From the NCBI GenBank assembly GCA_002269645.1, contig NIVC01004786.1:1-35040 (forward strand): a stretch of DNA of 35,040 bases, in the 5' to 3' direction. Below, in pieces: positions 3,165-26,700 of the stretch. Position numbers and translations under genes: made by a program. The stretch's first letter is position 1. Every line of letters starts with the position of its first letter. Below the pieces are notes generated by a model. That model searched no databases. It saw only the letters and a program-made list of their open reading frames with translations, and had not been told where the DNA came from. Source of the DNA: Macrostomum lignano. Lineage: Eukaryota.

Positions 3165-6100
3165 TCAGGGCAGGAAGGCCGGCCTGATGACCCACTCGGG
3201 GGTGCCGGCAGGAATCGGCCGCTGACTCCGGGTGGCCTCGTCGCGGACGCACTTGCCGAGCTGGGCGCGCTGCTTCACCGTGGCAAAGCGGCGCATGAAC
3301 GCCTCGTCAAGGCTCCGCTTGATGTCGCGCACCCGGTCAGACTCCCAGGCCAGACAGCGGACTCGCAGCGTCTCGTCCTCTTCTTCCTCATCTGATGAGG
3401 TCAGATCGCGGGTGAGCACGATTCGGTAATGCTCAAGATCGTCAGGCGACAGGTTCGGCAGTAGAGTCTCGAAGGCCTTCTGACGGCGGCTCAGCTTCTG
3501 CATATTTAGGTACAGGAAGGTAGAGAAGCGGTATGAACTACTGTAAGTAGCGAAATTGAATTTTACATATTTTCAAAAATTTTACTTCATAAAATATTTC
3601 CAAACAGCTGAAATTGATAAATATTAGGTGTTAAATTGACGGGGCAAAATCCGACAGTGTGGAATCTGGCACAAACTAGGTAGGTCATGGTGAATGACCA
3701 CAGAATGATCCTTTTGATAAGCATCAATAAATTCAATGATATTCAATGATATTGCTGACTGAGTAGCAGAGCTCACTCAGAGACATTGGGGATTGAGTAG
3801 CGGAGCTCACTCATGGACATTGGGGATTGAGTAGCGGAGCTCACTCAGGGACATTGGGGATTGAGTAGCGGAGCTCACTCAGGGACTCACTCATGGACAT
3901 TGGGGATTGAGTAGCGGTGCTCACTCAGGGACATTGGGGATTGAGTAGCGGTGCTCACTCAAGGACATTGGGGACTGAGTAGCGGTGCTCACTCAGGGAC
4001 ATTGGGGATTGAGTAGCGGAGCTCACTCAGGGACTCACTCAAGGACATTTGGGATTGAGTAGCGGTGCTCAATCAGGGACATTGGGGATTGAGTACCCAG
4101 AGCTCACTCAGGGACATTGAGCATTGAGTAGCTCAGTCACTCAGACTCTCCAACCAGTAGCAAGACTCTCTCACCCGCTTCCATCTGCCACTCTTTGCAG
4201 CAGACTTTCTACGCACAATAATCCACTTAAGTTCGTAAGCAAAGTATTTTGAAATTTTGCCTGAAAATTGAATTATCAGAATTAATCTATTTTCAAGCAG
4301 AGTATAAAAAGCAAAAAACTTACAATACTATTCAAGCGAGTTTGCCATGTCAGCCCAAAAGAGCTACGTTTAAATTTTTTATATTTAATAAGACCTGATG
4401 GCACAAAAACTTTTTTTATTTAGTAGATCATTTTAAGTTTTAGGACTACTTGCATTAGTACATGTGTATGCAGAAGATGGAAACAGTGTAGGTACCCCAA
4501 GGCCCAGTGTCAATGTACATTTGTGGGGCTTGTGCCAGTTCAGTGGGGGAAGGGAGACACTGTACGGTAAGGGAAGGCCCAGTGTCAATGTACATTGGTG
4601 GGGCTTGTGACAGTTCAGCGGGGGGAGAGACAGTGTACAAAAAGTCGAGGCCCAGTGTCAATTTACACTTGAAAAAAATCTAGTCAAAAACCGATCTGGA
4701 AGGATGCCTTGTGGCTGTTTTAAATTCTCATAATTACCGACTTCACTCGATAAGAGCGCCAGGCACGCCTTCGCTTATCCATAACAAATTTTCTCTCCGA
4801 GTCAAATGACGTCTTCATCTTGTCGCTGGCAGCTGGGGGAATCGATTTGTAATAGATAATAACACAAATAAAATTTACAGTGGGAGACTAAAGCTAGCAA
4901 GGGCAGAGATTGACAGAGACAGGCAGCTTAAGACAGGCAACTGACCACGCGCAATCGGGCAGACTTTCTGGCTGTCCGCCGGTTGTACAAAATCATATGG
5001 GCCAATCGGCTGTGAAAAATTTCCACGTTAGCTAAAATAATTATAATAGCAATATAATTGATATACAGATAACTGCAGTAATTAGCGCACAAGCCCACAC
5101 TGAAAATGCTGCTGCCTTAAAAAACGCTGCAATATGAATTTGATAATTCCTATCGTCCAAATTTTGAATAATGCTGTTTTTAGCTTGCAAGTGGGAGATG
5201 GCTATAAGCATTGAATATTAATTAAATGGAAATTGTCATTGAAACCTTAAAAACCTCCAGGAACTCCATCTCCGCACACACAGTGCACATCGCAGATACT
5301 ATGCCACTCAGGCATATTCAATACATACTTAGTAAAACAGCTTTCTACTTTCAGTTCAGTAGCAAAGAAGAATACATAAGCTATTTTATAAGAATAAAGG
5401 CCGCTGAAATGACTTTGATAAGTTTAGAAGCCCAAGCTTGCAGGCGTAAACAATTTGCTAGCTAATTAGTTAAGCAGTAATGTACATTAGCCAGTCCACT
5501 GAAATGTACATGGCAGCTTTAGGCTGGAATTCCGAGAAAGGCAATAAAAATTGGGCGTAGTGTGTAAAGGGGGCTGTTGGAGGGTTTAAGCTAGGGGGGT
5601 AAGAGCCAATAAAAAGAGCCTTGGCTTTAAAAATACCATAAAATGCTTCTGTTTAGCTAACTACTGAACTGAAAGTAGTTTATACGAAACGTGCTTTGTG
5701 GCCCATCTAGTTATTATCTATCTCACGTAGATCTTTGGTGCACACACAGACAAACTGGCAGGCCACACACATCTCCCAACACAGGCACTAACCACGCGGA
5801 GTCGGCCAGCTCGTTTAGCAGTTCTCCGATTAGACAATACAATATTGCCCAGCCGCCTGTGGAACTGTTCTGTGCTGGCTAAAATATTTCATGAGAAAAT
5901 ATTTATATATACATATATGCTAATGTATATAGATCTGCTTTTAAAAGCAAATTAGCAGAATGCTGTCACAGTGCTGCCAAAAAAAACGCTGCTGCTTTTT
6001 TATTTAAAAAATAATTGCATGGTGGAGTTGTGTTTTAAACTGCCTCAGAGGCCAGGGACCACTGGAAGGTCAGGTGCTCAGGACTAACCTAGCTGTTCAG

Positions 6101-9100
6101 TCTCAGGTGTTCAGGACTAACCTAGCTGTTCAGTCTCAGGTGTTCAGGACTAACCTAGCTGTTCAGTCTCAGGTGTTCAGGACTAACCTAGCTGTTCAGC
6201 CTCAGGTGCTCAGGACTAACCTAGCTGTTCAGTCTCAGGTGTTCAGGACTAACCTAGCTGTTCAGTCTCAGGTGTTCAGGACTAACCTAGCTGTTCAGCC
6301 TCAGGTGTTCAGGACTAACCTAGCTGTTCAGCCTCAGGTGCTGAGGACTAACCTAGCTGTTCAGTCTCAGGTGTTCAGTCTCAGGTGTTCAGGACTAACC
6401 TAGCTGTTCAGTCTCAGGTGTTCAGGACTAACCTAGCTGTTCAGTCTCAGGTGTTCAGTCTCAGGTGTTCAGGACTAACCTAGCTGTTCAGTCTCAGGTG
6501 TTCAGGACTAACCTAGCTGTTCAGTCTCAGGTGTTCAGGACTAACCTAGCTGTTCAGTCTCAGGTGTTCAGGACTAACCTAGCTGTTCAGTCTCAGGTGT
6601 TCAGGACTAACCTAGCTGTTCAGTCTCAGGTAGGTTTTCAGGATTTCTAGAATTAATCAAAACGTCCTACTAAAATAACCAGCTTACACTTTTGTTCTGA
6701 ACCATTTCTTAGCACTTTTGCGATGCTTCTCAATGGCAATGCGCTGAGCTGTGAACCAGGCGGAACAAGTCTCTAGTTTAAAAAAGTTATTAAGGTAAAA
6801 AAAATTTTTAAAAGACGACGCTAAAAGCAGAGCCTATTCACAACCATAGCGTCAAAGAGGTTTCAACAGAAACAAAAAGATTTCACCCCATACTACTACA
6901 AGTAGGCAGCTTACATTACGAATTCGACCGGATTTTTTTGCACTTTTACGATTTCTCTGCACTGTAACGCTCTGCGATTGAAACCACGTGAGTAGCTTGT
7001 CCGTCAGCTCTGACGCGTCATTAAAATATTATTCAATAAAGCTAGTTGAATAAAGATTAGCTAATTCTGAGAAATTATAGATATCGCGTTGTAGAGGCTT
7101 GCGTGCAATAGAAAATATTGAAAAAATAAGTTTTTTATTAAAAACACCAGGAATTTACTGTTTTCCATCGTTTGGATCGTTTGGCACTGATTCTATGCTT
7201 AGCCATGGTGACGCCCTGGGTGACAAAATATCTATTGATTGCGCCTGACGGATTGCGGCGGGGTGTTGCACCTTTAAAACACTTATTTAACAATATAAAC
7301 AGCAAATGGCAGCAAACCGCCTGCTGAACAGAAAGATAATAGAGCGCGTTGAAGAGGCAATTTTCACAACTTACAGCCTTTTGCCTGTTACTCTTGCGCC
7401 AAATTAATCTGGAACGCAAACTAGACTGCTGCAGGAAACCGTATTCCTTCTGACACGTGGCTGCGTGAGTGCGGAATATTTGTTTCTTAGAATTTATATT
7501 TAAATATCGTTTCTTATAACATACTTTAATAAAACAAGCTATGATCTCAAAATGGCTCGTTTCACAAACTCTCAAAGCTTTCGCTATTGATTTGATTTTA
7601 TAAATGTAATTTTAGAAAAAAATCTGTTGTTTCGAAGTTTCCGGATATTGTAATCTCTTAATTGTAGATGACTAGCGTCTGTCTAAATGCACATAGGGTT
7701 GGGGGTGGGACTAGGCACAGTATTCTGTGGGACTAGCGTCTGTCTAAATGTACATAGGGTTGGGGTGATGACTAGCGTCTGTCTAAATGTACATAGGGTT
7801 GGGGTGATGACTAGCGTCTGTCTAAATGTACATAGGTTTGGGGGTGATGACTAGCGTCTGTTTAAATGTACATAGGGTTGGGGTGATGACTAGCGTCTGT
7901 CTAAATGTACATAGGGTTGGGGTGATGACTAGCGTCTGTCTAAATGTACATAGGGTTGGGGTGATGACTAGCGTCTGTCTAAATGTACATAGGGTTGGGG
8001 TGACTAGCGTCTGTCTAAATGTACATAGGTTGGGGTGATGACTAGCGTCTGTTAAATGTACATAGGGTTGGGGTGATGACTAGCGTCTGTCTAAATGTAC
8101 ATAGGGTTGGGGTGATGACTAGCGTCTGTCTAAATGTACATAGGGTTGGGGTGATGACTAGCGTCTGTCTAAATGTACATAGGGTTGGGGTGGACTAGCG
8201 TCTGTCTAAATGTACATAGGTTTGGGGTGATGACTAGCGTCTGTTTAAATGTACATAGGGTTGGGGTGATGACTAGCGTCTGTTAAATGTACATAGGGTT
8301 GGGGTAATGACTAGCGTCTGTTAAATGTACATAGGGTTGGGGGTGATGACTAGCGTCTGTTTAAATGTACATAGGTTTGGGGGTGAACTCAAAAGACGGT
8401 CACGTGATTCTACGATCTGGAAGCCTCAACAAAAGATTTTTTAAATACACGACTGAATTATTTAATAGCTTTTCCACCTTACTTGCGCACCTTTTCAATC
8501 ATCTTTGAATTTCTTAAACTGGATTCCCCCAGCATTAAATATCGACTTGATTGACTGAGTTTTTAAAACTACCAGGTTAGCTAGTATCTTAAATATAATG
8601 AGATTTATAGCATTAGCAGAAGTCTACAAAATCGGAGCACATTATACTATTATTATCACTAATATAATACAATTTGTGGGACAATAAATATGACTACAAC
8701 ATTGAAGCCAATGCACAGAGGCCTGGTGAACCCCCCGGTTCCAGCAACTCGCTTGGCATGCTAAATCAATCGGAGCCGAGACTCACCATTGTTCGCCTGT
8801 AAAATTTGGCCACATTCCTACGATTAGACAGAACTGGCTGCCTATACTGTGAGTAGACGGAGCTTAGCACGGCTGCAAAATAGGCGATTGTGAGTGCCGA
8901 GAGATGCTCAGCTGTGCTGCTGCGACTGGGCTTGCGTTGCTTAATGTCTGATTAGCACTGCGGCTTGGCCCAGTGGGAGGCTGGCCCAGCAACTGAGGAT
9001 CTGGGAGGCTGGCCCAGCAACTGAGGATCTGGGAGGCTGGCCCAGCAACTGAGGATCTGGGAGGCTGGCCCAGCAACTGAGGATCTGGGAGGCTGGCCCA

Positions 9101-10547
9101 GCAACTGACATCTGGGAGGCTGGCCCAGCAACTGAGGATCTGGGAGGCTGGCCCAGCAACTGAGGATCTGGGAGGCTGGCCCAGCAACTGACATCTGGGA
9201 GGCTGGCCCAGCAACTGACATCTGGGAGGCTGGCCCAGCAACTGAGGATCTGGGAGGCTGGCCCAGCAACTGACACTCTGGGAGGCTGGCCCAGCAACTG
9301 ACACTCTGGGAGGCTGGCCCAGCAACCGAGGATCTGGAAGGCTGGCCCAGCAACTGAGGATCTGGGAGGCTGGCCCAGCAACTGAAGATCTGGGAGGCTG
9401 GCCCAGCAACTGACACTCTGGGAGGCTGGCCCAGCAACTGAGGATAAGGGAGGCTGGCCCAGCAACTGAGGATCTGGGAGGCTGGCCCAGCAACTGAGGA
9501 TATGGGAGGCTGGCCCAGCAACTGAGGATAAGGGAGGCTGGCCCAGCAACTGAGGATCTGGGAGGCTGGCCCAGCAACTGAGGATCTGGGAGGCTGGCCC
9601 AGCAACTGAGGATCTGGGAGGGTGGCCTAGCAACTGAGGATCTGGGAGGGTGGCCTAGCAACTGAGGATCTGGGAGGCTGGCCCAGCAACTGAGGATCTG
9701 GGAGGCTGGCCCAGCAACTGAGGATCTGGGAGGCTGGCCCAGCAACTGAGGATCTGGGAGGCTGGCCCAGCAACTGAGGATCTGGGAGGGGGCCCATGTA
9801 CACGTAAGTCTAGTATTCGCTATAAAAGTCTGTCTAAATCTGCAGATTTTTAAGAAGTGTTGCAAGCATAACGCAAAACTCAAATCGGAATCCAACAGCA
9901 AACATGAGAGCCAACAAGCCTACACCAACTGACGCTAAATAGTATAGTTGAAGAAAACGACAAACAAAATGTTAAATTTATAATTTTAGGGAATAATTAA
10001 TTAGGATAATTAATGCATACAATGGGCCGCACTTCTTGAACAGCCGGGACGCCAAAGTTCTGGCGCAGTGGGAGTCTGCACACCAATTTTAGAACCAAGT
10101 AGTGTATGTAGCTCAATATAAATTGCATTGACTCAATAAATTTTTACGATTATAAATCTGAGACACCTGGGCAGCGGCAATTATAACTAATTTTAAGCGA
10201 TTTTTACGGCAGACTTGCAAACACTCGCTGGTTTCTTTCTTTCTCTGTAAACCTCTGCAACGCTATAGCTTAATAATTCAATTGAATACGGCAGTATAAG
10301 TTCATTTAAATAGACATGTAACATACAGGTAAGAAATGCAGTAAATATTAATTAACTTACTGCGCCAAACTTCAGCGTTTGCTGCAATGCCGGACACAGC
10401 CTGGGCCTGATCGATTACTTTCTTGGCCACCATCTGATTCATCGGGTGCTCGAAGCTGAGCAAATTGGAGTGGCGTTGGGTTGGCTGCCTGTCTGTCTGT
10501 GTGTGTCTGTCTGTTCTGTCTGTCTGTCTGTCTGTCCGTCTGTCTGT

Positions 10548-10618
<71 letters not shown>

Positions 10619-10813
10619 TAGTGTCTGTGTGTCTGTCTTAGTGTCTGTGTGTATGTCTGTCTTAGTGTCTGTGTGTATGTCTGTCTTAGTGTCTGTGTGT
10701 ATGTCTGTCTTAGTGTCTCTGCGTATGTCTGTCTTAGTGTCTGTGTGTCTGTCTTAGTGTCTGTGTGTATGTCTGTCTTAGTGTATGTGTGTATGTCTGT
10801 CTTAGTGTCTTAG

Positions 10814-10848
<35 letters not shown>

Positions 10849-13284
10849 GTCTGCCTGTCTGTGTGTCTGTCTGTCTGTGTGTCTGTCTGTCTGCCTGTCT
10901 ATCTGTCTGTCTGTCTGTCTGTGCGGCAGCATGAAGCAAAGGCACAACTCACGGTTTAGCAAAGTCGAACAGGTGTGGTCCGCTGCCTCGCAAATTCTTA
11001 TAAGTGTCCTTCAGAAGATTCTGGAATTCCCAAGACATTCAAAGTAATTATATATAAAAACATTAACTTTTTATTGGGTCACTGGCTCAATCCCATATTT
11101 TAAGAAATTTTTTGAACAAGAATTGCATTCTACATTAGCTACTACGAGGGGCGTACCGAAAGTTTTGAGATACGCCGAAACCACAAATATCTGAAGCAAA
11201 ATTTCTGTCACAATTTTTTGAAGTAGTTGCCACCAGCTTGCACGCATTTCCTCATCCGGTGAAACCACTGCGTTCAGGCTCCAGCCCACTGTTCTTCTGG
11301 CACTGCTGACACCACCTGCTCGAACTCGAATCTTGCTGCTTTAGGGCTCTCAAACCGAGTCCCACGCAGTTGGATCTTCACCAAAGGGAAGGGAAAGAAG
11401 TCGCAGGGTGCCAGGTCAGGGAATATGCTGGATGCGTCCAACTGGACTTCATTCTCGGCCAGAAATGCCAATGTTGCAACAGCCATGTGCGCACTGGCAT
11501 TGTTGTGGTGCAGCAGCAGGCCACGAAGTCCGGTGCGCAGCCGGCGTCTGCGCCACGCATCGAGCACGAGCGGCAGGCACTGGTTAGTATACCAGTCGGC
11601 ATTGACTGTCCGCCTGTTTTGGAGCGCTACAGTCGCCAATTGGCCGGCCTGGCTGAAGAAAGTCGCCACCATCTGCTTCCCGACGCTGCGGGCCCGCTTA
11701 ACTTTCGTTGGAGTGGCATCGTCCGGAAGGAGCCAAACTGCAGAATGCTGCTTGGTTTCCGGGTCGTGCTGGCAGACCCAGGTCTCTTCGCCACTGATGA
11801 TCTCCCAGCATCACTTTGAAGTCCCAGAATCAAATCTTTCCAGCATAAACTCGCACCAAAGCACCCTCTCCGCTTTCTGGTCTCCGTTAGGTTGTGGGCA
11901 CCCAGCGGGCACACCGCTTGGAGGCTCCCAGCTTGTCGTGCAGGATGGTCGTAACTGCTGCCGATCCAATGCCGAGAGCCTCTCTGACCTATGCACAGGT
12001 CACTCGCCGGTCCTCGTCAATCATTCTTCGGACAGCAGCGATGTTTTCGTCCGTGACAGCGGAAGCTGGACGTTCCGTCCGAGGCTCGTCATCAAGGCTG
12101 CTTCGGCCCCACTTACATTCGCTGTACCACCGAAAAAACTATGGCACGTGAAGGGGCTTGATCTCCAAAGACAGCATGTAAAGTTTCAACGCACTGCTCC
12201 TACGTGAGACCTTTTCGCTGGTTGTAAACAATCATGACTCGAAAGTCGCGATTTGTCACTTCATTGGAGCAAGTACAGTTTGGTAGGGGGTATCGTTTTT
12301 AAGGATGTGATTGTGAAAGATTGACAAAAGCGCAAAGGCTGAAAATTAATACTCAATCATCTTAAAGGTGGTACAGTATGTAAATAAAAATTCCTGCAGT
12401 TGTGATTTATGAGTCAGCCGTATCTCAAAACTTTCAGTACGCCCCTCGTATAGTTAATAGCTAGCTAGTAGCTAGGCCTTTCCATTTGCTTATTTCCGCT
12501 ACACTGACTGCTACAAGAGCTCCATGAAATGCTTTCGCTACGTTCATTAATTAACAAGCCAGGCTGTCTATCTAATAAGGAAGAGAACTGAGAGTTTTCA
12601 ATAAATTTAATTCATACTACTCAGAAAGTTCATATGGTAAGTAGGCAGTGCGAATTTTAACTCTTTTTTGGCACTCACCCGAACATCCACGTTGCTGGGG
12701 CCGCCAGCAGCGCAAGCGCCGGCGCCGCCGCTGAAGCTGCTCTCCTCCTCCAGCAGCAGACAGTCGTCGTCTTCGTCGTCCCCGGGAAACGATGAGGCTC
12801 CCCCAGCATCGCTAGCAAAGCTGTCAACGTGGCCGAGAGTCTGCTGATGAAGCTGCTGGTGCTGCTGTTCCAGCTTCACGCCGAGTAGCGGCTCCTTCGG
12901 CTCCAATTTGCACGGCCGCTTTGCCGACGGCGGACTGGCGCCATCGCCGGCGCCAGCAGCAGCGGCAGCACTGGAGCAACTGGCCGCGGCTGAGTGATGC
13001 TGGCGGAGACTCTGCTGCTGCTGTTGCAGCTGCTGCAGCTGTTCCTGCAGCTCCCGATTGGAGGACTGCACCTGACCAGCGCACGGCTGCATCACATCAA
13101 CAGCCTGGTGCTGCAGGTTGCAGATGAGGCGCACAGCGGCCACCAGTTCGTCCAGCGTCATGCTGTCCAGCAGCATGCCGGCATTGAGCAGAGTGGACTC
13201 AAACAGGGTCAGCGCGGAGAATGAGGACTGAGCAGCTGACGGCTGCTGCTGATGATGGATAGGTAGCACGGATGCGGCAGACAT
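3165..13284 (-). CDS. Paralogue A of an uncharacterised C14orf93/DUF4616-like family with an internal cassette-exon array (~395 aa per isoform)
   Basis: Constant exons 13284-12679 (MSAAS..NVDVR|gtgagt), 11020-10953 ([23 protein letters not shown]), 10455-10361 ([31 protein letters not shown]|gtaagt), one cassette from 8872-4175, last exon 3497-3165 ([38 protein letters not shown]). All junctions are GT-AG and phase-consistent; every exon is homologous to paralogues B and C. Confidence 0.85.
3756..4137. repeat. Intronic minisatellite, 34 bp unit
   Basis: GACATTGGGGATTGAGTAGCGGAGCTCACTCA(T/G)G tandem copies. Confidence 0.9.
4175..4260 (-). CDS. Paralogue A cassette exon A9 (86 nt): (S)[28 protein letters not shown]
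   Basis: attttcag|GC..CGG|gtgaga; phase 1 in, phase 0 out; open; homologous to the other cassettes. Confidence 0.85.
4496..4660. repeat. Degenerate tandem repeat, ~2.5 copies of ~75 bp
   Basis: GGCCCAGTGTCAATGTACATT.GTGGGGCTTGTG.CAGTTCAG recurs. Confidence 0.7.
4738..4832 (-). CDS. Paralogue A cassette exon A8 (95 nt): (T)[31 protein letters not shown]
   Basis: ttcccccag|CT..TCG|gtaatt; phase 1/0; C-terminal half aligns with A6/A7 without gaps. Confidence 0.75.
4946..5031 (-). CDS. Paralogue A cassette exon A7 (86 nt): (T)[28 protein letters not shown]
   Basis: ttattttag|CT..GTG|gtcagt; phase 1/0; clear duplicate of A6. Confidence 0.88.
5376..5461 (-). pseudogene. Possible dead or poison cassette (86 nt, in-frame TAA)
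   Basis: attag|CT..TAT|gtattc gives exactly 86 nt and phase 1/0, but [27 protein letters not shown] shows little similarity to the others and the donor is weak. Confidence 0.3.
5793..5878 (-). CDS. Paralogue A cassette exon A6 (86 nt): (T)[28 protein letters not shown]
   Basis: atattttag|CC..GTG|gttagt; phase 1/0; shares VLSNRR with A1. Confidence 0.88.
6068..6630. repeat. Intronic minisatellite, 33 bp unit
   Basis: TCAGGTGTTCAGGACTAACCTAGCTGTTCAGTC, ~16 near-perfect copies. Confidence 0.95.
6688..6772 (-). CDS. Paralogue A cassette exon A5 (85 nt as assembled; 86 if a G is missing at the donor): (K)[28 protein letters not shown]
   Basis: ttttaaactag|AG..AAAGT|gtaagc; restoring GTG|gtaagc gives 28 codons like its siblings; peptide closely resembles A3/A4. 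Confidence 0.72.
6915..7009 (-). CDS. Paralogue A cassette exon A4 (95 nt): (K)[31 protein letters not shown]
   Basis: cgtcag|AG..AAT|gtaagc; phase 1/0; RKSAKKSGR is shared with A5/A9. Confidence 0.85.
7159..7244 (-). CDS. Paralogue A cassette exon A3 (86 nt): (S)[28 protein letters not shown]
   Basis: ccgtcag|GC..ACA|gtaaat; phase 1/0. Confidence 0.83.
7375..7460 (-). CDS. Paralogue A cassette exon A2 (86 nt): (T)[28 protein letters not shown]
   Basis: ctcacgcag|CC..GCT|gtaagt; phase 1/0; same length, more divergent peptide. Confidence 0.75.
7664..8385. repeat. Intronic minisatellite, ~39 bp unit
   Basis: GATGACTAGCGTCTGTCTAAATGTACATAGGGTTGGGGT, ~18 copies. Confidence 0.95.
8483..8568 (-). 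pseudogene. Possible dead or poison cassette (86 nt, in-frame TGA)
   Basis: cctggtag|TT..CAA|gtaagg; 86 nt, phase 1/0; [27 protein letters not shown]; strong donor but weak acceptor and weak similarity. Confidence 0.35.
8787..8872 (-). CDS. Paralogue A cassette exon A1 (86 nt): (T)[28 protein letters not shown]
   Basis: ttttgcag|CC..ATG|gtgagt; phase 1/0; an in-frame upstream acceptor at 8911 is also possible; FYRRTM mirrors FIRRLM of B4. Confidence 0.83.
8975..9790. repeat. Intronic minisatellite, 28 bp unit
   Basis: CTGGGAGGCTGGCCCAGCAACTGAGGAT, ~29 copies; source of three spurious long ORFs. Confidence 0.95.
10488..10922. repeat. (TGTC)n microsatellite with a derived 24 bp higher-order unit
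   Basis: Fills most of paralogue A intron 10952-10456. Confidence 0.95.
11145..12448 (-). mobile_element. Full-length (1304 bp) defective mariner transposon, irritans/Hsmar2-like TIR
   Basis: 30 bp TIRs CGAGGGGCGTAC(C/T)GAAAGTTTTGAGATACG (1 mismatch), TA duplication at 11143-44 and 12449-50. Minus-strand transposase remnants: HTH region, [32 protein letters not shown]. Several stops and frameshifts. Sits in intron 1 of paralogue A. Confidence 0.95.
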
Positions 13285-16718: not shown

Positions 16719-19700
16719 CTACACCCCATAGCTCTCCTCGCCGTCTCCGCTGCCGCCGCCGGGCAGAGCCTGCCAGGCGGGATTCCTGGCCCAGGTCAGG
16801 CTGTCAGGCGGAGGCGGCCGGTTGGACAGCACAGCCGGATCGCGCTGCACCCGGCTGATCTCGGCCCGCTGCTTGTCATCGGCCAGCCTGGCTAGGAAAG
16901 TTTCGTCTAATTTCTGCTTCACAGCTCGCAGCTCGTCGCTCTCCCATGGCAACGAGCGGACCTTCATCTCAGAGTCTAAATCTGTGCCGCCCTCCTCATC
17001 CGAGCTGGTGTAGTCTCTGGTTAGCACGCTCTCGAATTTCGTTTGGGCAGACGGATCCAGCTCGTCCTTAATGAGCTCGTAGCTCTTCTGCCGCCTGTTC
17101 AGCTTCTATAGGCGGACAGTGGGAATTGGCAGGTTGGTTATCCAGGTTAATTGCATAAAGCGGCCGAGTGTGAAGAATGGAGCATCCACTCTCATCATTG
17201 CAGAGGAGTGACACACTAATATGAAAAGTGAAACAGTCACTGCAGAGGAGTGACACACTAATATGGAGAGTGAAACAGTCATTGCAGAGGAGTGACACAC
17301 TAATATGGAGAGTGAAACAGTCACTGCAGAGGAGTGACACACAAATATGAAGAGTGAAACAGTCACTGCAGAGGAGTGACATACTAATATGAAGAGTGAA
17401 ACAGTCACTGCAGAAGAGTGACACACTAATATGGAGAGTGAAACAGTCACTGCAGAGGAGTGACACACTAATATGAAAAGTGAAACAGTCACTGCAGAGG
17501 AGTGACACACTAATATGGAGAGTGAAACAGTCACTGCAGAGGAGTGACACACTAATATGGAGAGTGAAACAGTCACTGCAGAGGAGTGACACACAAATAT
17601 GAAGAGTGAAACAGTCACTGCAGAGGAGTGACATACTAATATGAAGAGTGAAACAGTCACAGCAGAGGAGTGACACACTAATATGAAGAGTGAAACAGTC
17701 ATTGCAGAGGAGTGACACACTAATATGGAGAGTGAAACAGTCACTGCAGAGGAGTGACACACTAATATGGAGAGTGAAACAGTCACTGCAGAGGAGTGAC
17801 ACACTAATATGAAGAGTGAAACAGTCACTGCAGAGGAGTGACACACTAATATGGAGAGTGAAGCAGTCACTGCAGAGGAGTGACACACTAATATGGAGAG
17901 TGAAGCAGTCACTGCAGAGGAGTGACACACTAATATGAAGAGTGAAACAGTCATTGCAGAGGAGTGACACACTAATATGGAGAGTGAAACAGTCACTGCA
18001 GAGGAGTGACACACTAATATGGAGAGTGAAACAGTCACTGCAGAGGAGTGACACACTAATATGGAAAGCGAAACACCTACAACTGAGACACAGAGCGAGA
18101 TCAGGTGGAGATAGTACATGCAGTAAAATCGCAGGAGTGGCGCAACGTCTTTGGCAACAACGGCCCACATCTGTTACTAAGGCAACTCAGCCCATTTCGC
18201 TGACTCCTGAGGCTAAGATTCGGAAAATCGTAGAAAAAATGCCATTAAATGGCGAGCAGGTGAAAAATCACAGACCATTAATCGCCGTATGAATCGCTGG
18301 GTGTCCACATTCTTAACAACATTTCTGAACGGATACTTGAGATTCTTGGCGTAATAGTAGCGAAAGTACTTCACTGCTAGGGCTAAAAACAAACAAACAA
18401 GGATAGATAACCAACGCTAGACGCATTCGGATTAGAGAATGGCAGGACGGGCTGGTGCAGGCTGGTGGCTTCTATCTGGCCTATCCTAGCTTCTTTTTTC
18501 TTCTTCAAAAATTCAAAACAGATTTAACAAACGCACCAGACTCTGCCGCACGATATTCATTGTGTCAAGCTCGCGTTTGCGCAGCTTATAAGCCGAGCGC
18601 AAGTTTTTACTATAGTGGCCGCCGAAATAACGCCTGGCTGCGTCTGAACAGTAATTCATTATGTATGATTATTAAGTTATCAATGTTCTAACTGGCTAGG
18701 TTCATTTGGATCGTTTGCAGGGCTGTTGTGCACTGTGCAGACAGCACAATATCTATTCCATTCCCAACTTTTAGCTGATAATTGGTCACGCGTTTGGCTA
18801 AAAATTATGAAGCTACGTTATGGTTACGAGTTATTCAACTATTTGTTTTAACTAAAATTGGCCTTAAAATCGGTGCAGCAAAGTGGCTGCGTATCATCTT
18901 GTACGAGTACAGCTACTTACCATTCTTTCTTTTCTGTGAACACTCACGAACAGTCGCAGTCATTCCCATTAGACACTCGCAATCCTTCCCGTGAACAGTC
19001 GCAATCATTCCCGTGAACATTCGCAATCATTCCCGTGAACAGTCGCAATCCTTCCCGTGAACAGTCGCAATCATTCCCGTGAACACTCGCAATCATTCCC
19101 GTGAACAGTCGTAATCCTTCCCGTGAACAGTCGCAGTCATTCCCGTGAACAGTCGTAATCCTTCCCGTGAACAGTCGCAGTCATTCCCGTGAACAGTCGC
19201 AGTCATTCCCGTGAACAGTCACAGTCATTCCCGTGAACAGTCGTAATCCTTCCCGTGAACAGTCGCAGTCATTCCCGTGAACAGTCGCAATCATTCCCGT
19301 GAGACACTCACAAGTGAGGCTGATACGCGAAAAGAAGGCCGATGCCGTTTGAGATGCTGGTATTGCCAGTTCTTGTAATACTGAGGACTGAGATAGCGAT
19401 GGCTCTTGGCTGGACAAGCAAATTTGAATTTAGCATTGAGCTGTGTTGTTGCCTTTCAGAACTAGCAACAGGAAAACCCGAAGCGCTGGTACAAAAGAAG
19501 ACTACAGGCATCGCAGGGTCTTGTGCGCTTAAATTGGAATTAGCTCTTTTACGGCATTGCTTACCAGAAACAGGTTGACAGAAGTTTTCATTTTCTCCTT
19601 CTGAAAGCCGTACTTCTGAGCCGGTTTCAAGGTGGACGTATAATAAATCCGCAGGTATTTGTTGTAAACCGAGTCTGCGCGATAAGACCGCGTGCCAGCC

Positions 19701-23786: not shown

Positions 23787-26700
23787 CTAGAAGCGGAACC
23801 CAGACGCAGGATTATCAGCAGTGTCAGTCGCAGTCCTGTTGGCTGTAGTTGCGGCATCGCCCCAGCCAACCACAGCCCAGGCCTGCGGACTGTCGGGCGT
23901 CGGTCGCTGACTAATCCAGGCTGGGTGTCGCCGAACTCGCTCGAGCTCGCGCCGCTCTCTAGGATTAGCGATGACCTCGGCAAAGTGCCGATCGAGCATG
24001 GCTTTCAACCTGGCTGCCTCGGCCGACTCCCAGGACAGCCGTTTCACCCGCAGCACCGTGGAGCTGCTGTCGCCTTCATCGGCGGGCACCTCGTCATCCG
24101 AGCTGGTGTACTGAAGATCGAGTAGGGCGCGCAACCGGGCCGTGTCAACGGGGCTGAGGGCGCCGTGAGCCTGCAGATTGTCGTAGCTGCGCTGCCGCTG
24201 GCTCAGCTTCTGCGGTTGGGAGGGGGTCACAGCTGCCTTGGCTACTGTAGCGGGGGGGGTGTCACAGCTGCCTTGGCTACTGTAGCGGGGGGGTGTCACA
24301 GCTGCCTTGGCTAATGTAGCGGGAGGTCACAGCTGCCTTGGCTACTGTAACGGGGGGTCACAGCTGTCTTGGCTACTGTAGCGGGGGGTGTCACAGCTGC
24401 CTTGGCTACTGTAGCGGGGGGGTCTACAGCTGCCTTGGCTACTGTAGCGGGGGGGGGGGTCACAGCTGTCTTGGCTACTGTAGCGGGGGGTCACAGCTGC
24501 CTTGGCTACTGTAGCGGGGGGAGGTCACAGCTGTCTTGGCTACTGTAGCGGGGGGTCACAGCTGACTTGGCTACTGTAGCGAGGGGGGTCACAGCTGACT
24601 TGGCTACTGTAGCGAGGGGGGTCCCAGCTGACTTGGCTACTGTAGCGGGGGGGGTCACAGCTGCCTCACCTTGGCAGCTCGGGATGCCCAGCCGTGCCTG
24701 GGCTGGTGCTGTCGGCGATAATTTCTACGAAGAATGTCTTTGAACCAGTAGCGCATGAATGTCTCCACAAGGATGGAGTCTGCAAATAAAATCAGACAGA
24801 CAAGCGGTTGTCCTGGAGTCCGGAATTAAAGTAAAAATTACAAATATGGCTTCTGAGTCTAGATATCGATGGTCTTTGGTTTATGTGGTAGCGCTAAACA
24901 GTGCGGCTTGGAAAGGCTGCCCTCACTCTAATGGTCAATCAATGAGCCTCTACTACCCTCACGATTCACCAATGAGCCTCTACTACCCTCACGATTCACC
25001 AATGAGCCTCTACTACCCTCACGATTCACCAATGAGCCTCTACTACCCTCACGATTCACCAATGAGCCTCTACTACCCTCACGATTCACCAATGAGCCTC
25101 TACTACCCTCACGATTCACCAATGAGCCTCTACTACCCTCACGATTCACCAATGAGCCTCTACTACCCCATTATTCACCAATGAGCTTCTAGTGGCATCA
25201 CGATTCACCAATAGCCTCTATTACCCTCACGATTCACCAATGAGCCTCTACCATCCCTAAGATTCACCAATGAGCCTGTCTACCACCCCAATATTCACCA
25301 ATGAGCCTGTCTACCACCCCAATATTCACCAATGAGCCTGTCTACCACCCCACTATTCACCAATGAGCCTGTCTACTATCCCACTTTTCACCAATGGGCA
25401 TCTCTACTACCCTCACGATTCACCAATGAGCCTCTACTACCCTCACGATTCACCAATGAGCCTCTACTACCCTCACGATTCACCAATGAGCCTCTACTAC
25501 CCCATTATTCACCAATGAGCTTCTAGTGGCATCACGATTCACCAATAGCCTCTATTACCCTCACGATTCACCAATGAGCCTCTACCATCCCTAAGATTCA
25601 CCAATGAGCCTGTCTACCACCCCAATATTCACCAATGAGCCTGTCTACCACCCCACTATTCACCAATGAGCCTGTCTACTATCCCACTTTTCACCAATGG
25701 GCATCTCTACTACCCTCCCGATTCGCCAATGAGCCTGTTTACCACCCCACGATTCACTAATAATTGACTACTACCTCCACGGCCTAGCAATAAGTTACTA
25801 CTTTGGCTAGGATACTACTTAATCTATGGCTGTAATAATGAAACAAACATGACGCTCACTTTTCCACGACTCAACATCGGGCGGCGGTTGGCTAGTCATT
25901 GACACGGCCTGGTTGATAATGGCCTGGGCCGCCTTCAAATTCACTGGGGCAGAGTATCTGCGGGTGCAGTTAGCGATCTAGCGCTGCTATTACATATAAA
26001 AAGGATGCTAGCCTAGTGGTTAAAGCGTCGGACTCTCGACTTGAAGGTCGAGGGTTCGATTCCCGATCCCAATGGAACGATTTGTGTCCTTGACACCCAG
26101 CTATAAAAAATGGGTGCCAGAAAAAGCTGGGGAAATTGAGGGTGTGTGTGGCGACCCCCCCCCCCCCAGTCATACATGCGCAACTGCTGGCCGACCTGGC
26201 CACCGTAAATTGTGGTGGACCAGGGGTAAGTCGCAAAAATGCCCACCCCAAAGAATACAGACGTAGTACTAATTAGATGACGAGGCATTTAGCCCTTACA
26301 AGAGAGTCATAGTTACTCCTGCCGTTTACCCAAAATTGCGTTAATGTTGCTCTAGGGTTTCTTTCACAGGTAGGTCACATTTTTGGTCAAAAAGTAAGTC
26401 GCATGGCCAGTGTAAATCAGGGGGTTGCGCATGTATGCCCCAGTCCTTAGACTGAACAGCTGTACGCAGCCTTCAGTCCAATTCAGTCAATAGCTGCGGC
26501 TGAGCTGTCGGTTGCACACCTGGCCCAATAAGGCCGGGTGTAAATCAATTAATTAATTAAAAATCATGATGTACAACCTAAACTAAAACTGAATAATTGG
26601 GTTCTGAACTTTTACAGACATGAGACACTTGGAATTCAATATTTCAGTGCCGACAATGGCATCCACATCGAACTCAGTCCAAATTCAGTGCCATGCCTCA

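Follow-up and report, generated by a model that had tools for sequence, protein, structure and literature searches.

Organization of the gene A locus

The scaffold examined here (contig NIVC01004786.1, referred to over its whole length of 35,040 nt as 'the window') comes from Macrostomum lignano, a flatworm and not an insect, and is a complete scaffold of assembly GCA_002269645.1; it is eukaryotic, rich in minisatellites, and contains three tandem paralogous genes, designated A, B and C, all encoded on the minus strand. Gene A, the subject of this report, harbors nine short alternative exons ('cassettes', c1 to c9 in the order of transcription) between constant exons, and probably contains a cluster of mutually exclusive exons (MXEs). 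The constant parts of the spliced gene A model match M. lignano proteins exactly, and this was the only species returned by the protein search.

Gene A begins with exon 1 (12679-13284, minus strand, with the ATG at 13284), which is identical to the N-terminus of the database models P0013 and P0002 and ends GTTCGG/gtgagt in phase 0. The 68-nt exon 2 (10953-11020; ccag/AAT...AACC/gtgagt) was revealed by database models and is absent from the original prediction, which correctly described the exons on either side of the array. Upstream lies the constant, 95-nt exon 3 (10361-10455), which reads GTT TGG CGC A/gtaagt at its 3' end (VWR plus A) and closes in phase 1 at 10361; downstream lies the last exon (3165-3497), whose acceptor opens in phase 0 at 3497 with cag/AAG CTG AGC (KLSRRQK), and which encodes a conserved C-terminal domain ending in AFLP and a stop codon. 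Located between these two exons, the array is internal and does not consist of alternative first or last exons.

All nine cassettes are found on the minus strand where they had been predicted, each with an AG acceptor and a GT donor and each open only in the frame imposed by its phase-1 acceptor, and the peptides originally quoted for them are exact. Cassettes c1 (8787-8872), c2 (7375-7460), c3 (7159-7244), c6 (5793-5878), c7 (4946-5031) and c9 (4175-4260) are 86 nt long and encode 28 amino acids; c4 (6915-7009) and c8 (4738-4832) are 95 nt long and encode 31; and c5 (6688-6772) measures 85 nt in this scaffold. The lengths are thus similar throughout (83, 85 or 86 nt in seven cassettes and 95 nt in two, or 27-31 amino acids), and all cassettes combine a phase-1 acceptor with a phase-0 donor, c5 doing so by way of a weak donor or of the allele described below. 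The donors are GTGAGT, GTAAGT, GTAAAT, GTAAGC, GTTAGT, GTCAGT, GTAATT and GTGAGA, and the acceptors have reasonable pyrimidine tracts (c1, for example, is bordered by tattttgcag and gtgagt). The introns between cassettes range from 113 to 1488 nt. The window's array lacks U12-type sites, and a profile scan of the window detected no tenth or decayed cassette.

The locus is also found on two other contigs, one nearly identical to the window (L001) and one a diverged copy (L002), and both retain the nine cassettes in unchanged order. These copies bear on the single departure from the length of 3n+2 that had been ascribed to every cassette, and that is found in eight of them. With its strong GTAAGC donor, c5 is 85 nt long and shifts the frame in this scaffold; a weak GTGTAA donor two bases upstream yields an in-frame form of 83 nt (6772-6690). 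In L002 the A-run is one base longer, giving an 86-nt exon that uses the strong GTAAGC donor. The missing A (window 6688-6700), which is shared by the window and L001, is a homopolymer indel that represents either a residual error of the PacBio-based assembly (PMC5730564) or an allele-specific lesion.

Frame constraints on splicing

As exon 3 ends in phase 1, the last exon starts in phase 0 and the copies measure 3n+2, the C-terminal domain is kept only when exactly one copy is included. Joining exon 3, a single cassette and the last exon yields an intact protein of ~400 amino acids in 9/9 cases (for c5, via the 83-nt form). No combination of two to four cassettes retains the C-terminal domain (0/36 doubles, 0/84 triples and 0/126 quadruples, or 0/246), and the stop codon precedes the last junction in 22 of the 36 doubles. 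When all cassettes are skipped, translation stops after 18 codons, within the last exon. These combinatorics bear out two elements of the original prediction, namely that inclusion of zero, two or three cassettes shifts the frame, and that the locus contains tandem homologous alternative exons of which the frame permits exactly one per productive mRNA. Frame-enforced MXEs are recognized by a length not divisible by three and by a premature stop upon inclusion of zero or two copies, and the gene A cassettes show both features.

Relatedness of the cassettes

The interval containing the array (6.9 kb) includes 190 open AG..GT segments of length 3n+2, most of them inside repeats. A composition filter that makes no use of a profile (AG, GT, 3n+2, open, and at least five K/R among the last 14 amino acids) leaves nine loci in this interval, exactly the cassettes, where ~1.4 would be expected. 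The opposite strand yields none, and the remaining ~63 kb searched yield 13.

The nine cassette peptides can be aligned without internal gaps. Leave-one-out profiles recover c3, c4, c5, c6, c7 and c9 with E-values from 3e-8 (c4) to 5e-4, recover c8 marginally (E = 0.04), and miss both c1 (E = 0.66) and c2 (E = 39). Mutual homology, which had been proposed for all nine, is therefore demonstrable for seven (c3-c9, with c8 marginal) and not for the first two. Cassette c1 is the most divergent, displaying weak homology in permutation tests (p = 0.002-0.01), while c2 is homologous to the lone cassette of a paralogue, the P0004 gene (13/28 residues identical, permutation p<0.001); judged by this sequence match, c2 is clearly a genuine exon type. 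The closest pair within the array, c6 and c7, has a dS of ~1.3 and a dN/dS of 0.26; in the other pairs, synonymous sites have reached saturation. Despite this old divergence, all cassettes have retained their frame, length class and splice sites.

Conservation across genomic copies

Comparison with L002 provides a measure of constraint, as non-repeat intron differs between the two copies at 137/3289 positions (4.2%), with ~76 further gapped positions. The cassettes differ at only 7/789 positions (0.9%) and at no indels, a divergence ~5-fold below that of the introns (Fisher p = 5e-7). Four of the seven substitutions are synonymous and three non-synonymous; c3, c6, c7 and c8 are unchanged, the changes in c2 and c5 are purely synonymous, and c1 has a single substitution. 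The 10 nt preceding each acceptor show no divergence at any of the nine cassettes (0/90), and 8/12 of the longest perfectly identical runs fall on cassettes, including a run of 206 nt that contains c8. This pattern supports conservation of the cassettes as coding sequence.

In the first intron of the array, two blocks of ~100 nt (10188-10288 and 9995-10103) are also perfectly identical to L002. With a divergence of 4.2%, chance alone would produce about two runs of this kind, and the blocks are not significant, but a search for regulatory elements would naturally begin with them.

Isoforms represented in existing models

The BOX15 gene models derive from a genome-guided RNA-seq transcriptome assembly (StringTie/TACO together with de novo assembly, with open reading frames from TransDecoder) (PMC5730564). 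Two of the models, P0013 on this scaffold and P0014 on L002, join exon 3 exactly to the last exon and include no cassette. The transcript-derived model P0002, on L001, consists exactly of exon 3, c3 alone and the last exon, and is truncated solely because of a 1-nt deletion in the c3 of that contig (9612-9696). Three UniProt models based on an earlier assembly (P0001, P0012 and P0015) consist of exon 3, c2 alone and the last exon. Models thus support two cassettes, and annotated transcripts at two copies skip all of them, which falls short of the 'at least 9 isoforms' originally proposed; for the other seven cassettes (c1 and c4-c9) we infer use from their sequence features. The annotation deposited for gene A on this scaffold (PAA46591.1, BOX15_Mlig019817g1) is the cassette-less, frameshifted product of 274 amino acids, and this truncated annotation misses the productive isoforms of ~400 amino acids.

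Related cassettes in other genes

Cassettes of the same kind are found in the paralogues, in varying number. Gene B contains two that are homologous to each other, b1 (18537-18643) and b2 (18276-18382), both on the minus strand and 107 nt long (3n+2). Each is productive singly, and the product is lost both when they are joined and when both are skipped; relative to L002 the pair shows 0/214 substitutions, in a gene whose intron is 4.1% diverged. Gene C contains a single cassette of 110 nt (3n+2; 24670-24779, minus strand). Elsewhere in the genome, about three cassettes are present in the P0003 gene and a single one in each of the P0004, P0005 and P0008 genes, so that array sizes across the paralogues are 1, 1, 1, 1, 2, ~3 and 9. 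A profile built from the gene A cassettes does not detect those of B or C, which belong to a longer subtype.

Several gene A cassettes have their closest relatives in other genes: c2 in the P0004 gene, c9 in the P0003 gene (its second cassette) and c6/c7 in the P0005 gene. As cassette types are common to different paralogues, these types must predate the divergence of the genes, and the array is old. Either an ancestral array was followed by losses in the paralogues, or gene A acquired cassettes from them.

The second cassette of the P0003 gene (L004 9089-9180) is followed by GTATCCGT, which starts like a U12-type donor, and an alternative GTGTGC donor lies 6 nt downstream. At two other loci (L004 1-10499 and L005 1-8807), an A-like gene has a B-like gene (KLNRRQKSYE...) immediately upstream, and the B-then-A tandem pair is therefore an old duplicated block.

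Interpretation of the array

We consider it probable that gene A contains a cluster of mutually exclusive exons, in which one exon has been duplicated into nine and exactly one copy enters each productive mRNA. The exon encoding the family's hypervariable, helical and basic segment, located just before the invariant KLxRRQK helix, would have undergone tandem duplication into nine copies, and the productive output would comprise up to nine proteins of ~400 amino acids that differ solely in a helix-turn-helix stretch of 27-31 residues. The choice of cassette would be regulated. Among possible mechanisms of exclusivity, the sequence reveals just the reading frame, which mRNA surveillance presumably reinforces; exclusivity would on this account come from these two rather than from a dedicated RNA-pairing device.

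The original prediction had placed the array among systems with a 'Dscam-like' mechanism, for which we find no docking/selector complementarity and no shared intronic motif in tests that were confined to flanks of 120-200 nt, simple measures and one species. Duplexes predicted between the cassette flanks and the two introns next to the constant exons are long and non-specific and do not converge on one site, the flanks share no k-mers beyond shuffle expectation, and the longest complementary stems equal those of the null.

Several observations weigh against mutually exclusive use of the nine cassettes. The tests just described, simple and restricted to a single species, revealed no mechanism of exclusion at the level of splicing itself. 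Only c2 and c3 occur in any model, and no cassette is included in the representative transcript-derived models at two copies, such that inclusion may be rare or restricted. Considered one by one, conservation is significant just for c3, c6, c7 and c8 (p of ~0.025 each) and is weak for c1, c2, c4, c5 and c9. Homology of c1 to the other cassettes is not demonstrable, given its leave-one-out E-value. Finally, the frame of c5 is broken here when its best donor is used and c3 carries a 1-nt deletion in L001, both of which could be real lesions instead of faults in the assembly.

A more ambitious version of the mutually exclusive account, which we advance tentatively and regard as possible but doubtful, holds that the full set of nine cassettes is in use, with one in each mRNA, chosen in a cell-type- or stage-specific manner; they would act as interchangeable basic helix hairpins that set binding specificity, the cassette types having been spread by splicing and paralogy without a Dscam-like device.

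It seems rather unlikely that only a subset of the cassettes is spliced in (c2, c3 and perhaps a few more), the rest being silent relics or sequences conserved for a non-coding reason such as the regulation of splicing. Such a restriction would fit the presence of c2 and c3 alone in the models, the lack of detectable homology between c1 and the others, and the broken frame of c5 in this scaffold, but with c2 and c3 set aside the remaining cassettes still carry just 5/617 substitutions, against 4.2% in the intron, and c6-c8 carry none in 267 nt. Silent relics are also hard to reconcile with cassettes that are saturated at synonymous sites and yet, in all nine cases, keep an open frame, a length of 3n+2 and AG/GT borders; from base composition, we estimate that a neutral 84-nt stretch would remain open with a chance of ~0.2 each. 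The dN/dS of c6 versus c7 speaks against the restriction as well, as does the finding that the counterparts of c9 and of c6/c7 are expressed cassettes of other paralogues.

We judge improbable a further explanation, according to which the main output of gene A is the cassette-less, frameshifted 274-amino acid product, and cassette inclusion serves as an on-switch that restores the C-terminal domain, with cassette identity being of minor importance. Transcript-derived models at two genomic copies do skip all cassettes (PMC5730564), and a skip-all mRNA, the stop of which lies in the last exon, would be expected to escape nonsense-mediated decay by the usual exon-junction rule. A switch, however, needs one cassette rather than nine divergent ones under purifying selection, different cassette types have been retained in the single-cassette paralogues, and the skip-all models may not mirror abundance, as short-read transcript assemblers often lose variable exons.

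That the array arose by chance or through faulty assembly is scarcely credible. In favor of this reading, the genome is highly repetitive and its assembly redundant (PMC5730564), the introns are full of minisatellites, and most of the open AG..GT segments counted above lie inside repeats. Three independent contigs, however, carry the nine cassettes in identical order, and the introns of one of these contigs are ~4% diverged; no cassette is part of a tandem repeat, coincidence is opposed by the homology and by the chance controls, and two cassettes belong to existing models. The assembly artefact that the original prediction had listed as fatal to it is thereby effectively refuted.

The encoded segment and its protein family

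The segment encoded by the cassettes is the least conserved block of the protein across paralogues and is flanked by strongly conserved parts; this hypervariable segment is likely to be the specificity determinant of the family. For the c2 isoform, AlphaFold gives a model that is confident over residues ~124-240, has pLDDT values of 64-92 across the cassette, and places in the cassette the end of one helix and the start of a long basic helix, which runs on into the constant C-terminal part (two helices). A Foldseek search of this model against the PDB returned nothing significant (best E = 0.47). The proposal that the cassettes encode a 'nucleic-acid recognition helix' accordingly finds a segment that is predicted to be helical and basic, and no fold match to sustain the functional label.

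An exhaustive profile search recovered 329 relatives of the family; those with names come from a brachiopod, an annelid, a bivalve, echinoderms, hemichordates and amphioxus, and every name is that of an 'uncharacterized' protein. The family is a bilaterian-wide group of uncharacterized proteins. (A word-indexed search with a profile of the distant members returned just three proteins, none of them named.) In distant homologues, the segment equivalent to the cassette consists of an aromatic Y[FY] and then a long stretch of basic residues that immediately precedes KLxRR, and the cassette is therefore an ancestral part of the protein. Pfam scans gave no family at E<=10 for six Macrostomum members and none at E<=0.01 for ten distant members, and scans of fragments of A, B and C matched no family either. 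The label 'C14orf93-like', which the original prediction had attached to the gene, is unsupported because no Pfam family matches any of the 16 members; the named homologues, as noted, are all 'uncharacterized'.

Relation to known alternative splicing systems

Known MXE clusters mostly have two members, and few with more than a handful of exons are known outside arthropods. Clusters that originated through tandem duplication of an exon, such as those of Drosophila Mhc and MRP, have been defined and predicted with WebScipio and Kassiopeia (PMC3228551, PMC3923563), and 29 validated MXE clusters have been described in C. elegans (PMC4165533). Gene A resembles the WebScipio/Kassiopeia clusters in having internal, neighboring exons of similar length, splice pattern and frame that are for the most part demonstrably homologous and encode the same protein segment, with an exon length not divisible by three, such that inclusion of zero or two copies breaks the frame. 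It differs from them in its host, an uncharacterized flatworm gene, in its nine members, a large number, and in having experimental confirmation for at most two of these.

In Drosophila Dscam1, the exon 4, 6 and 9 clusters have been linked to competing docking/selector RNA structures (Graveley 2005, as cited in PMC3923563; further Dscam1 papers are PMC1431710 and PMC6071210). Gene A shares with Dscam1 a tandem series of many homologous alternative exons bordered by constant ones, and the presence of one variable segment per isoform; unlike Dscam1, it has no detected docking site, selector-like motif or excess complementarity to the introns next to the constant exons. The variable exons of Dscam1 are also far more numerous and encode immunoglobulin half-domains of known function, whereas exclusivity in gene A is explained by frame alone.

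The genes lola, mod(mdg4) and fruitless possess sets of alternative 3'-terminal exons, partly trans-spliced, which encode zinc-finger or FLYWCH domains. Like these genes, gene A joins a constant N-terminal part to alternative variable modules, but its module is an internal cassette of 28 amino acids, and the C-terminal domain is common to all isoforms. The analogy with these genes drawn in the original prediction does not carry over to an array with an internal variable exon and a constant last exon. A further parallel is the interchange between splicing and gene duplication, in which homologous alternative exons of one gene correspond to separate paralogues in another; in gene A, c2, c9 and c6/c7 are each closest to the cassette of a different paralogous gene.

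In the literature searched, nothing relevant was found on MXE splicing in Macrostomum or Platyhelminthes, or under the gene identifiers. The array is an unusually large MXE cluster of a known class, that of tandem exon duplication, in a host organism and a protein family for which this literature contains no described case. M. lignano is a laboratory model with transgenesis and RNA interference, and offers a gene family with 1, 2, ~3 or 9 exon copies whose types are shared across genes. Two questions become testable in this setting: how exactly one exon is chosen without obvious competing RNA structures, and how alternative splicing and gene duplication substitute for one another. Should all nine cassettes prove to be used, the family would constitute a natural experiment on the trade-off between splicing-based and duplication-based diversification.

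Repeats and other features of the window

Simple or tandem repeats account for 15% of the M. lignano genome (PMC5730564). Nearly every long intron of A, B and C contains a minisatellite of its own, with a period of 22-42 nt and up to 30 copies (3760-4144, 4498-4667, 6070-6631, 7731-8382, 8974-9796, 17195-18075, 18948-19302, 24222-24666 and 24940-25761), and the intron between the cassette and the last exon of gene C consists almost entirely of a 33-nt repeat. Upstream of the gene A array, an (ACAG)n microsatellite of ~440 nt, as read on the gene strand (10485-10922), ends ~30 nt before the acceptor of exon 3. In the first intron of gene A (11274-12207), overlapping open reading frames with no Pfam match resemble, by eye, a relic of a mariner/Tc1 transposase (HHNNASAH, PDLAPCDFF).

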